Shown here: piece after piece, positions 3,049-34,979 of the stretch
How positions within the stretch are numbered: position 1 is the first letter of the stretch
Layout of the letters: every line of letters starts with the position of its first letter
Assembly: GCA_023515725.1 (NCBI GenBank)
Contig: JALDTO010000154.1
Coordinates: 639,484 to 703,483, forward strand
Length of the DNA stretch: 64,000 nt
Direction of reading: 5' to 3'
Source of the DNA: Amoeboaphelidium protococcarum X5
Lineage: Eukaryota > Fungi > Aphelidiomycota
Position numbers and translations under genes: made by a program
The notes under the pieces: model-generated
Seen by the model: the letters and a program-made list of their open reading frames with translations, nothing else
Databases searched by the model: none
Told to the model about the DNA's origin: nothing

Positions 3049-3473
3049 AGAGAAACGGAAAAGTTTGACACTCGCTCGAATTCTTTTCTCTTCACTCCCT
3101 CTTTGGGCGTTCGTTCTCTAATCTGTTTTAAACAGGGAGGTCGTTTCACACTGCGCCACATTTCCTATCGTAATTCTTTATTCTCAGTCTTTTCTCATAT
3201 ATTAGATCATCTACTTACTTACAGAATGCATGCATCTGTAGTGAATTACCAGAAATTAATTTCAACGTTCCTTGGTTACGCGGCGAGAGTTAATTTCACG
3301 TCTCGCTTTTGCCTGCACACACATATTTCCCGTTCCTTCAGTGTGTGTGTGGGTGTGTGTGCTGAAACAACTATAGCAAAACAGTTGCAAATTTCGTAGA
3401 ACCGCCTGTAGGGAAGGAAGAAGTGAGAAAGAGAGAATTAACAAAAAACCAAGAAAATCATATCAATTAAAAA

Positions 3474-3758
3474 ATGTAAACAATTCTTGCTGCAGCTGTC
3501 GGATACTCGATTGGTTTGTAGTAAAATTAATATTTTGGATCAGATTCATTGTCCGGTCTCACAGTTCTTCCTCGTAATAAATTCAGTTTGATTGTGGCCG
3601 CCGCTAGTTTATCTATTGTATATACCGCTTTGGTCTATCTCATTTACCGCTGTCTACCTCCGGAACTTGTGAACGATCGACCCGGCCTTACACCACGGTA
3701 ACAATAGTTGCAATCATCTCGGTACTTTAGAGAATTTAGACGTAGAGGTAGTTTCTGA
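3474..3758 (+). CDS. 94-aa single-pass membrane microprotein / uORF immediately upstream of GPI1
   Basis: AAAAA-ATG context; MQTILAAAVGYSIGLQQNQYFGSDSLSGLTVLPRNKFSLIVAAASLSIVYTALVYLIYRCLPPELVNDRPGLTPRQQQLQSSRYFREFRRRGSF-TGA; one clear hydrophobic helix; stop 40 nt before the GPI1 ATG. Confidence 0.6.
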
Positions 3759-3798
3759 ATACTTGGTGCTCTGTATAGCATTATTATCTGGATATTAG

Positions 3799-6096
3799 AT
3801 GGATAAAGTTGTTGTTTTATTTCCCTCTAGCCTTTAATTGGAGGCTGACTGCGGCTTTCTGGTTGGTTGGAATTCATCGCCCTCTCAGTGCTGTGTGGCT
3901 GCTGTTGTATACTAGTCCTCTTTTAAGGAGTTGACTGATGTTTGTACTGAATTGAATAAAGATTATAAAGAATGCAAGTACATGAATGAAATAGCTGGTG
4001 CGGAGGCTTGCGTTTTGGGACAAATATATAAAGATAAGTAGACTTATAGCTAGTTGAATCGCTCGTCTTCAAGAATGTAGCAGTAATACATTACGGATTC
4101 AACATTCTGGTTAGAGTTGGTTTTTGATGATGATAGTAATGGTACAGGTACCGGCTTGGATTTTCTGGCTCTTTCGTTAAATGGTCTTCCATAGTAAGGT
4201 CTCAATGTCTAAATGATATTTTACCGTCCTACTGATTCTTTTGATCTCTAATTCTATTCCATCTATCCAATGAGTTTAGACGTGGATTTGCGGACGATTG
4301 TATAGAATGTGGATGCTGTCAGTAGTAAGGCCTCTATCCATTCCTCCCTTTAGTCGTCATTAGAAGCTAAGGTTTTATCTCATGCTTATGATGGTGAAAT
4401 GGAGGGCCAATCGAGTAGCGATATCAATCATAACAGTAAATCAAATGACTTTTCGGTACTTATCGCTCAGGCAAATTGCTCTAATGATTTTAGAAAGATA
4501 CTTACTGATTAATGTAAAGAAATGAAGCTTGATGCAATTGTTTTAAAGGGTCGTTAGAATTTGACTGTACTTTACCTTGCTAGATTGATGATATTGCAGT
4601 TTATATCGTCAATATTTACTATATTTGGAAAATTGGTTAGACTCCTTAAGTATCCTGTATCTATGGCAATAATGATATTGCGAGTTATATGTGAAATTAT
4701 AATATTGGTCATTAATTTTTAAATTGGGAATAGCATATCCTTGGTTAGTTTATCCAATATTGCACGTCAAATTAATCTGAGACTGCAATAGGCTTGCTTC
4801 TGGCCCTGGCAGTACGCAGTATTCCTGCGTCCTGGATGGAGAAAGTCTGTTAGGAATCGAGCGCATTATATCAATTTTTATAATACAGTCTGGTTGGTGG
4901 CGAATGACGTTATTATGGGTATAGCATTTGGCACTTTTATCTACGAGAATAGACACTAACTTACCAAGTATCTATCCAGTTGCCTACATTTCATCAATGA
5001 CGATGTGATTGAGAACGCCATAGGTTGGTTGATGGGATGGCCTGCTGGGTTGAAGTTGAATGATAATTTGGACAAGTTTATTGGGGAGCTGTTTCTATGG
5101 CTTCTCCAGATGTGGATTCATGTTATAGGCATAGTTATGAATGTAATGCCATAACTTTTGGGCCTGGTTGGAATGAGTGGAGTCTTTGGTTGTACAATGA
5201 TATTGGCTATTGCTGCGGACTTGTCTTTCTTATTGAATCTGCATATAGTTCTATTTTATACTTTTGCTGCGAAAATATACAATTGGTAGTTGTAGATATT
5301 GTATTCGCTGTTTAATCTGTTCCGAGGTAAGAAGTTTAATGCTCTGAGATTGCGTCTCGACTCTTGCGATTATGATTTAGATCAACTGTTGCTGGGGACT
5401 ATTCTGTTTACTCTATTCTCCTTTCTCTATCCTACGGTCATAGTATACTATGTGTTATTCTGTGTGTGTCGTGTGGTTAGCATTTTATATCAAGTGGTAA
5501 TTAAGATCCTATTGGCATTCCTCAACCATTTCCCCTTGTTTGCATTAATGCTCCGAGTAAAAGATCCATCTAGGCTGCCTGGTGGAATTTGGTTTAAATT
5601 TTTATCAGAGTCTGGCGACAGTAAAATGGCTAAGTTGAATGAAGTTGATGAAGATGAAGAACTGTATTTGAGGCGCGCATCAGCTTAAAGTTCACGAACT
5701 CACAGTCGGTAATCATCGCGATCCGGTGGAGCTGCTGTAGGTGCGGCTAGTATAATACAAGATCGTGCTCCGTACAATATGACTCCATCACTGGTATATA
5801 ATTTGTAGCGTCATCGCAACTCTTGGAACAAGATATAAAAAATGGAGTTGTGCAATAATCCGATTAGTGTTATTACAATCTTCTATCAGTATAAGTTGCT
5901 TCTCAAGTAGTTGTCAGAGTATTATCCAATGCATTATGTGATAATGTCTTTGCTTTATGGTGAACCTATAAAATCAAGCCCGAATTTGTAGTATCCTAAT
6001 CTGCCTGACGATAGACCGTCCATGCAAACCTATTGGACATTTCTTATCAGTCTTTTATCTTCTGAATAGCCGTCTTAGGAACCGGAAGAAATTTGA
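3799..6096 (+). CDS. GPI1: GPI-GlcNAc transferase subunit Gpi1/PIG-Q
   Basis: YINFYNTVWLVANDVIMG, WLMGWPAGLKLNDNLDKFIGELFLW, LYSLFNLFRGKKFNALRLRLDSCDYDLDQLLLGTILFT; single frame to TGA at 6094-6096. Confidence 0.95.
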
Positions 6097-7123: not shown

Positions 7124-7447
7124 ATGGAGAACGCGTAGATCTAAAGTGATCACGGTGATTAAGAAATGGCAATAGAAAATGACACGTCTAGTGTTGTGAG
7201 AATAGTTGCCTAAATTGAAAAGTTGCAAGCGGCTGTACCTCAGCTCCTGGATATTGCCGCAGATGGTTGCACAGTTATCTCGTAGTTGACACAAGCATAA
7301 AGTGAAGATGTAATTTAATCTAAAACTGAATAGATTCAAGACATCACAGAAGCATACTATGAGTTACTAGCTAAACTTCGGATGGCTACGCGATAAATTG
7401 TACAAGAGATTGAAGATTAGTTGAATGCCGCGACCAGGACTGAGTGA
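7124..7447 (+). CDS. Small helical protein, probable Mediator subunit Med11
   Basis: 107 aa; IEKLQAAVPQLLDIAA...ITEAYYELLAKLRMATRQIVQEIE follows the Med11 helical pattern; ends in TGA. Confidence 0.5.
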
Positions 7448-7681: not shown

Positions 7682-7957
7682 ATGTCGACATCCGCGTCTT
7701 TATCGCCATCTGAGTAGGCAGCGTAGAAGGAACTATAGTAATTTCTTTTGATGGAACAGTAGAAGGCCAAGTTTTAGTAGCAGGTGCATACATTCACGTC
7801 AATGTGCTGGGAAAAGTGTCCAATTGGATCTGTGAGTGCGTGGAAGCTCGGCTCTAAATTGGACAAGGCCGATGTTGACTGCCTCGGTAATTGCGTGGAG
7901 AGATTTCTTGATACTGGCGCATTATTGCTGAAGCGCTTGGAATAATACGGCGGATGA
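7682..7957 (+). CDS. TIM8: Mitochondrial small Tim chaperone Tim8
   Basis: ELQQFLLMEQQKAKFQQQVHTFTSMCWEKC...CLGNCVERFLDT, twin CX3C; many of the conserved Gln are TAG/TAA. Confidence 0.95.
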
Positions 7958-33461: not shown

Positions 33462-34256
33462 TCAGATGTTTTCGTAGACTTTCTCTTTGAATTCACCAAC
33501 TCTGACACCCTTGTCTTCACCAGTGGCGCCAGATGAGCCGCTCTCACCGTGGAGCTCCAATAGCTTGCCGAGCTCATACTTTGGTGCCTTCAAGATCTTC
33601 ACCTTTCTCACAAACACATTCTACAATGGGTAGATACCCTGAGTGGCCTTCTCAATCTCCTTGCCCATAACCTCTGGGATCAGCTTCTCAACGAGACCCT
33701 TCAAGTCAACAGTCGACACCTCCTTCTTCACAATGTCGAACATCTTCTTGCGGATGGCGCGCACCTGACTGGAGAGAGCGTATGTGGTCTTCTTCACCTG
33801 GTTAGGTCTTCTCTTGGTGAATCCAATGACAAACACGCGCAACAGGTAATCATCAGTGGTCTTGACATCGACGAAAGCCTCAATAAGAGTCTACCACTTC
33901 TTGACCATGGAGCGGATCTTGTCGCTGGTAAAGTCAAGGCCGTAGAAGTTGGTCAGACAAACTTTGCTATTTCCGGCAGTCTAGATCTCCTCAACCTTCA
34001 ACTTGATCTTTCTGAAAGACTGAGCCTCATCCTTATTAAGATCGGCCAGACAGACCTCCAGCACACGTCCACGCAGATAATCATCAGCATTTTTAAGACC
34101 GTACGAGCGGTTCACTAGAGTCTTTCCAATGTCGCGATTCTCGAACATGACTGGTGCCTTAATATCGTACCAGTCCTTACGAGTGAACGGATCCACGACA
34201 CGCTTCTTAATACCCTTCTTTCCCTTGGATAAACGCTTATTCTTACCGACAGCCAT
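33462..34256 (-). CDS. RPS1: 40S ribosomal protein eS1 (S3Ae)
   Basis: [15 protein letters not shown]...[14 protein letters not shown]; KKW[TAG]TLIEA and IYPL[TAG]NV at conserved Gln positions; 264 aa. Confidence 0.98.
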
Positions 34257-34529: not shown

Positions 34530-34979
34530 ATGAGTAAAGACAACTTCTATTTACATTACTACTCGGGGCATCGAGGGAAGTTTGGACACGAATTTATAGA
34601 GTTCGAGGTGAGATCAAATGGCCTGGTTCGATATGCCAATCACAGCAATTACAAGAACGACTCTATGATAAAGAAGGAATTTTACATCAGCCAGATTGTG
34701 ATTGATGAAATGAGACGAATTATTGAGTAGTCAAAATTAGTTGGAAATCACGTCACTGATAAAGATTGGCCCAAGCCAGACAGAGTGGGAAAATAAGAAT
34801 TTGATTACTAGTATGGTGAAACTAAATTTCATTTGGAAACGTCCAAGATTGGTTCCCTTACTGAGGTGAACGCTTGTAAAGACTCTGAAGGGCTAAGTCT
34901 ATTCTATTATTTGGTCCAAGACTTGCGGCGCCTCATCTTGTCTCTAATCAGCCTACACTTTAAAATCCGTCCAGTGTGA
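34530..34979 (+). CDS. MAGO: Mago nashi (exon junction complex core)
   Basis: [21 protein letters not shown]...[11 protein letters not shown]...[15 protein letters not shown]. Confidence 0.97.

Follow-up and report, generated by a model that had tools for sequence, protein, structure and literature searches.

Does the 94-codon open reading frame (ORF) that stops just short of the GPI1 gene in the algal parasite Amoeboaphelidium protococcarum X5 encode a protein, and if it does, is it carried on the same messenger RNA (mRNA) as GPI1? The locus lies in a 64,000-nucleotide stretch of contig JALDTO010000154.1 (C154:639484-703483 of the 23.6-Mb assembly), referred to here as the window, and its features are collected in Table 1. 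An earlier note, made from the letters of the window, had proposed this small ORF as an unannotated coding sequence, and the position, the 94 codons, the AAAAA-ATG context and the 40-nt gap to GPI1 that it gave are all exact. The start ATG occupies 3474-3476, the TGA 3756-3758, and the spacer leads to a GPI1 ATG (3799-3801) that lies in another frame than the small ORF. Comparison of haplotypes confirms the observation and goes further, pointing to what is very probably a genuine microprotein gene that the annotation lacks, in tight linkage with GPI1. The best explanation of the whole would be such a gene acting, most likely, as the first (5') cistron of at least some GPI1 mRNAs, to which we assign a probability of about 0.5.

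Table 1. Features of the GPI1 locus, in window coordinates.
Feature	Position	Strand	Remarks
Conserved non-coding block	3255..3305		ACGCG core; candidate promoter element; nearly invariant in three or four haplotypes
ATG-free leader	3233..3473	+	No plus-strand ATG between 3230 and 3474
Small ORF	3474..3758	+	94 sense codons and TGA, with TAA/TAG read as Gln; very probable unannotated microprotein gene
Transmembrane helix (predicted), residues 36-58	3579..3647	+	Kyte-Doolittle 19-residue mean 2.29
C-terminal RRRGSF-COOH	3738..3755	+	Matches the protein kinase A (PKA) consensus, mode III 14-3-3 motif and tribasic signal of the coat protein complex I (COPI) type
Spacer	3759..3798	+	40 nt (41 nt in other haplotypes); no ATG
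GPI1 (PIG-Q)	3799..6096	+	765 codons and TGA; Pfam Gpi1

TGA must be taken as the sole stop codon for long ORFs to appear in the window. Between gene copies, in-frame TAA and TAG codons of known genes are exchanged with CAG or CAA 91 times, as against 51 times with all other codons, a pattern which indicates that TAA and TAG encode glutamine in this genome. The earlier caveat that chance ORFs of such length are not rare under this code was well placed, as the window holds 117 spurious ATG-initiated ORFs of 80-130 codons. Taken alone, the small ORF is within chance, and the comparative evidence alone raises it above chance.

Four haplotypes were compared, namely the window, contig C264 of the same genome, where the region occurs a second time in synteny (~90% identical), and contigs JALECJ010000005.1 and JALECJ010000007.1 of assembly GCA_023515745.1. 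Both JALECJ copies are C264-like (JALECJ010000005.1 shares ~98% identity with C264, and each of the two shares ~90% with the window), which indicates that strains carry different combinations of diverged haplotypes.

In all four haplotypes the small ORF retains 94 codons and the same ATG and TGA, with zero insertions or deletions (indels), and it lies 40-41 nt ahead of GPI1 in each of them. Between the window and C264, the 285 nt of the small ORF share 93.3% identity with no indel, while the corresponding values are 82.7% and six indel events for the 300 nt upstream, and 91.3% and three events for GPI1; the flanks of the small ORF are ~83% identical, with nine indel events in ~400 nt. The spacer, with 82.5% identity and one indel event (1 nt), evolves by this measure like non-coding sequence. 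The 19 substitutions that separate the two copies of the small ORF are distributed over the codon positions as 5/3/11, and 12 are synonymous as against seven non-synonymous (binomial p=6e-4), giving a ratio of non-synonymous to synonymous rates (dN/dS) of 0.18, as compared to 0.85 and 1.2 in the other two frames. Across the four haplotypes, 23 columns vary (codon positions 6/3/14), 17 of them synonymously and six non-synonymously (p=1.6e-6), and the three C264-like copies encode identical proteins, with 11 of 11 differing nucleotide sites synonymous. Depending on the haplotype, codon 2 reads TAA, TAG or CAG and codon 16 reads TAG or CAG. The neighbouring genes have dN/dS values of 0.02-0.25 (0.11 for GPI1) at a synonymous divergence (dS) of 0.25-0.36. 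Judged by these substitutions, the protein sequence is under purifying selection, and the small ORF is very probably a translated gene. Among the checks proposed in the earlier note were a dN/dS below 1 and the retention of the motifs PGLTPR and EFRRRGSF in syntenic ORFs. The first was borne out in the haplotype copies, in the frame of the small ORF only. The second was borne out for the RRRGSF tail, with residues 75-94 identical in the four haplotypes, and failed for PGLTPR, which reads PNLTPR in three of them.

Controls from the same alignment agree with the coding assignment. Other intergenic ORFs of at least 50 codons in the aligned region are frameshifted, gain a TGA or evolve neutrally in C264, while two real small genes, at 7686-7949 (Tim10-family) and 34530-34979 (149 codons), show the signature of the small ORF. 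An antisense ORF as the true gene was rejected, since the wobble-matched antisense frame scores weaker (10.5 synonymous versus 8.5 non-synonymous) and evolves neutrally where it runs over GPI1. A gene-conversion tract as the source of the high identity was also rejected, as the differences are periodic and the boundaries of the conserved segment coincide with the ATG and the TGA.

In the annotation of GCA_023515745.1, no gene is called between the ArfGAP gene and Gpi1 on either contig, and a word-indexed search did not recover the product of the small ORF in the protein collection, where the neighbouring Tim protein of 91 residues is present. The small ORF is therefore an unannotated gene. The sister-haplotype annotation does include a gene of 93 residues without a Pfam family between the DUF202 and Tim10-family genes (window ~7150-7430, plus strand); thus small genes do get annotated in this region, but the one at 3474 did not. 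The word search with the neighbouring Tim gene returned Amoeboaphelidium protococcarum only, and its Tim10-family product clusters with KAI3651501.1 of that species.

The product is predicted to be a single-pass membrane microprotein of 94 residues, whose N-terminus is weakly hydrophobic and whose one helix is followed by a basic tail. Both the single transmembrane helix and the terminal RRRGSF described earlier were recovered (Table 1), the latter invariant in the four haplotypes, with the tail Ser codon varying synonymously between AGT and AGC. The sole haplotype change within the helix is S45G. From the charge distribution and the positive-inside rule, the basic tail should face the cytosol. 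The trafficking control region at the C-terminus of TASK-1 and TASK-3 has the form -K-R-R-(K/S)-pS-V-COOH; the 14-3-3 motif of mode III is R-x-x-pS-x-COOH (PMC4760375). The protein of all four haplotypes likewise ends, as RRRGSF-COOH, in a tribasic signal leading into R-x-x-S/T-x-COOH. The three short motifs given for it in Table 1 overlap and are known from this TASK region, and the genome includes a 14-3-3 gene. This likeness to the TASK switch between COPI, 14-3-3 and PKA suggests, at the level of the motif, residence in the early secretory pathway. The match to TASK extends over six residues, and the carrier is a microprotein, not a channel.

Relatives of the protein were sought with its 55-residue stop-free core (3534-3698). 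There was no family match in Pfam (E value up to 1), and no relative in the word-indexed protein search, the ESM Atlas, the JGI metagenomes or the PDB sequences. An exhaustive HMMER search of 1.84 billion protein representatives gave a bacterial repeat adhesin as its sole match, on a low-complexity stretch. When the full protein was compared by tblastn with the loci of GPI1 in Zopfochytrium polystomum (chytrid) and Marasmius tenuissimus (basidiomycete), the results were random short matches, none of them upstream of GPI1; in both fungi, the gene upstream of GPI1 is a divergently oriented neighbour. The conservation across fungi that had been envisaged was thus found neither among the 1.84 billion representatives nor upstream of these two genes.

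Among small proteins functionally tied to GPI1/PIG-Q, the PIG-Y/Eri1, PIG-P/Gpi19 and DPM2/DPM3 proteins resemble the product in being endoplasmic reticulum membrane proteins of 70-140 residues. The product differs from PIG-Y, PIG-P and DPM3 in having one strong helix rather than two, and its 55-residue core has no Pfam match to them. A six-frame genome scan with PF15159 (PIG-Y/Eri1) found a sole locus at C182:27422-27628 (83 bits, E value 5e-22) and did not match the small ORF, in agreement with the earlier view that the small ORF is not PIG-Y. The PIG-Y of this genome, on the minus strand, ends in ...FFRHN and has an N-terminal extension of ~80 residues (~150 residues from the first Met); it looks monocistronic. 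Genome scans for DPM3 (PF08285) and PIG-P (PF08510) found two loci each elsewhere and none at C154:642957-643241, where the small ORF lies. DPM3 had been considered for its similar RRG..F ending and was rejected, the core having no Pfam match and the DPM3 loci lying elsewhere.

The relation of the small ORF to GPI1 was approached through their spacing and through the distribution of ATG triplets. The earlier statement that other co-directional neighbours are at least 190 nt apart did not hold, as one pair in the window is ~110 nt apart, and the 60 co-directional pairs counted over 264 kb of the contig have a 5th percentile of 65 nt (median 350 nt). The 40-nt gap falls below that percentile and is among the shortest spacings, but it is not unique. 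Other tight co-directional ORF pairs in C154:439484-703483 are separated by 31, 51 and 66 nt, and one pair overlaps by 50 nt; tight gene coupling may be a wider feature of the genome.

In all four haplotypes, the start of the small ORF is the sole ATG from 224-244 nt upstream down to the GPI1 ATG, with ATG-free leaders of 224-238 nt in the sister haplotypes. No ATG occurs in any frame at 3477-3798, i.e., across the 322 nt that separate the start codons, in any of the four, and among coding stretches of that length 29 of 13,579 (0.21%) are ATG-free in all frames. In the genome more broadly, the ATG-free leader has a median of 98 nt before starts and of 36 nt at random positions, a depletion which indicates that selection acts against upstream AUGs. 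In four of 120 genes the nearest upstream ATG opens an ORF of at least 60 codons that ends before the gene start, and the small ORF is the longest of these. The layout fits that expected if ribosomes reach the GPI1 AUG through the small ORF. With the sole ATG of the region opening the small ORF and the stop 40-41 nt before the GPI1 ATG, we infer a shared mRNA, to which we give an even chance. The earlier note had called this likely; the ATG-free layout and the very short spacer support it indirectly, while the transcript itself is a reading of those two features.

In the mechanism we propose, at least some of the GPI1 mRNAs would carry the small ORF as their 5' cistron. Most scanning ribosomes would initiate at its strong AAAAAUG, and a minority that bypass this AUG, or resume scanning after the stop of the small ORF, would next meet the GPI1 AUG. 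The gene might thereby both yield a membrane protein and keep GPI1 translation low, and a role as attenuator is plausible if the mRNA is shared.

Several points weigh against this proposal. The three bases before the small ORF (-3 to -1) are AAA, the context favoured among 119 genes, as against a T at -3 in GPI1; the weak context at the upstream AUG that goes with leaky scanning is absent from the small ORF, and leaky scanning should therefore be inefficient. On a shared mRNA, GPI1 would thus be translated by a minority of ribosomes only. Reinitiation after 94 codons is usually poor. The ATG depletion was noticed post hoc, and it would also be expected if GPI1 transcription started near the 5' end of the small ORF. 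As to the gene itself, codon usage is borderline, the score of 0.013 lying between the spurious and the real distributions (it is reached or exceeded by 10% of spurious ORFs, and 8% of real windows do not surpass it). All four haplotypes come from one species complex, and the conservation covers a dS of ~0.2-0.3 only. Finally, no collection searched with the core contains a relative of the protein.

An arrangement in which the small ORF is an independent monocistronic gene is a substantial possibility, though short of even odds. Its mRNA would end in the spacer or just after it, GPI1 would have its own start site, within the spacer or toward the 3' end of the small ORF, and the closeness of the two genes would reflect compaction with no translational coupling. 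The genome is compact, with 71% of 264 kb in long ORFs and convergent stops a median of 120 nt apart, and both the other co-directional pairs 31-66 nt apart and the strong start context of the small ORF, contrary to the expectation for leaky scanning, agree with separate transcription. Within the small ORF, two blocks (78 and 59 nt) are perfectly conserved and could hold GPI1 promoter elements, two such blocks being found in only 3% of equal-length coding windows. However, a late start site leaves the absence of ATG over the whole ORF in three frames unexplained, and the poorly conserved spacer of 40 nt is too short for both a terminator and a promoter. AT-rich 3'-end words, enriched after other stops, are weak after the small ORF. 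A search for promoter or initiator motifs near start codons gave a weak A-rich and TAGA enrichment only and was uninformative.

Next in order is a conserved-peptide upstream ORF (uORF) that acts in cis only, in which the act of translation or a stall by the nascent peptide would matter and the membrane protein would have no role. The invariance of the last 20 residues and 59 nt in all haplotypes, directly upstream of the main ORF, is what such an element might show, but 94 codons with a well-formed transmembrane helix are unlike known stalling uORFs, and purifying selection extends along the entire small ORF, helix included. We regard it as very unlikely. Ranked below it, and doubtful in the extreme, is a conserved non-coding leader or promoter in which the ORF is a chance frame within a regulatory or structured-RNA segment. 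A code with one stop makes chance ORFs of this length common, codon usage is ambiguous, and the searched collections hold no relative. Against this stand the three-base periodicity of the substitutions and the 17 of 23 variable sites that are synonymous in this frame only, as well as the interchange of stop-type Gln codons with CAG. Moreover, conservation starts exactly at the ATG and decays past the TGA, and no indel occurs, in contrast to the nine events in the flanks.

The identity of GPI1 itself is confirmed by a Pfam Gpi1 match (E value 7.6e-41) on the piece 5299-5688; PDB searches with pieces of GPI1 returned no PIG-Q chain. Its N-terminus, M-x3-VVLFP...GFLVGW, aligns with chytrid and basidiomycete GPI1 starts. 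The least likely alternative, that the small ORF is the first exon of GPI1 and that a GT-AG intron of 61/62 nt (3748-3808) removes the TGA, spacer and ATG and fuses it to GPI1 residue 4, satisfies the frame arithmetic with both 40-nt and 41-nt spacers and has a conserved GT and AG, but its donor GTAGTT and purine-rich acceptor are poor compared with an intron of the same contig that has GTAAGT, a pyrimidine tract and TAG, the chytrid and basidiomycete proteins start at the equivalent Met before a (V/I)F(W)P motif, with an in-frame stop just upstream of the start in the chytrid, the annotation of GCA_023515745.1 starts Gpi1 at the same ATG (3799), and the TGA and ATG are conserved where the spacer between them is not. 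The intron used for comparison, at C154 ~549,050-549,200, is canonical, ~70 nt long and joins two ORFs in a region that is mostly intron-poor.

Upstream of the small ORF, the conserved block of ~50 nt listed in Table 1 lies 170-220 nt before the start, in surroundings that are 79-83% identical with many indels, and it is a candidate promoter element for the pair formed by the small ORF and GPI1. The sequence ACGCGT also precedes the Tim10-family gene (~7672). In C264, an insertion of 4 kb (C264:2233410-2237459) is found just upstream of the block (window ~3170), ~300 nt upstream of the small ORF, and is absent from the other three haplotypes. It carries an ORF of 1,224 codons without a Pfam match. 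A piece of 95 residues of this ORF has at least 16 identical copies and ~30 matches genome-wide, and these many identical copies mark the insertion, on sequence grounds, as a recently active mobile element. Transfer RNA and Rfam scans of the window gave no match. Elsewhere in the window, the gene at 33465-34256 (minus strand) is 98% identical between C154 and C264, with 15 synonymous and no non-synonymous differences and a dS of 0.09 as compared to ~0.3 in its neighbours, which suggests gene conversion or very strong constraint.

The arrangement proposed here, with the small ORF and GPI1 on a shared mRNA, has parallels among human bicistronic transcripts that encode microproteins, including PYURF-PIGY, MIURF-MIEF1, ASDURF-ASNSD1 and the SLC35A4 uORF (STREMI) (PMC13303939). 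As in those cases, a conserved upstream ORF of ~70-100 codons with its own protein stands immediately ahead of a main ORF; PYURF-PIGY likewise has a tie to the glycosylphosphatidylinositol N-acetylglucosaminyltransferase (GPI-GlcNAc transferase, GPI-GnT), and the product of the SLC35A4 uORF is also a small single-pass membrane protein. The present case differs in that we infer the shared transcript from sequence alone. In human it is PIG-Y that is on the bicistronic mRNA, while here the neighbour is GPI1/PIG-Q and the genome's own PIG-Y is monocistronic and located elsewhere. The protein has no sequence relation to PreY or other known microproteins. Polycistronic transcripts have also been shown by long-read complementary DNA in mushroom-forming fungi (PMC4503453). 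The present genes, adjacent, co-directional and from a fungus-related lineage, are possibly co-transcribed in a like manner, although here co-transcription is deduced from spacing and ATG depletion only.

What the microprotein does was considered from its tail and its position. A role as a partner of GPI-GnT is speculation, and so is a link to Ras and PKA, for which the evidence is solely the match of the C-terminal motif. The most elaborate version, in which a lineage-specific regulatory subunit of the endoplasmic reticulum GPI-GlcNAc transferase is made from the GPI1 mRNA and its tail, as a PKA-triggered COPI/14-3-3 switch, ties cyclic AMP signalling to the first step of GPI-anchor synthesis in an aphelid, would be a long shot.

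Should none of these ideas hold, the product would simply join the orphan membrane microproteins. Should its tail motif function as that of the TASK channels does, a COPI/14-3-3 switch would have an unusually small carrier. The analysis adds what is very probably a real gene missed by the public annotation of Amoeboaphelidium protococcarum, and it indicates that haplotype comparison can rescue small ORFs where a one-stop code makes ORF length uninformative. To our knowledge, human PYURF-PIGY is the only classic bicistronic case in the GPI-GnT pathway. The ATG-free layout directly before GPI1 makes this locus a concrete candidate for a bicistronic mRNA beside a GPI-GnT gene in the sister lineage of the fungi.

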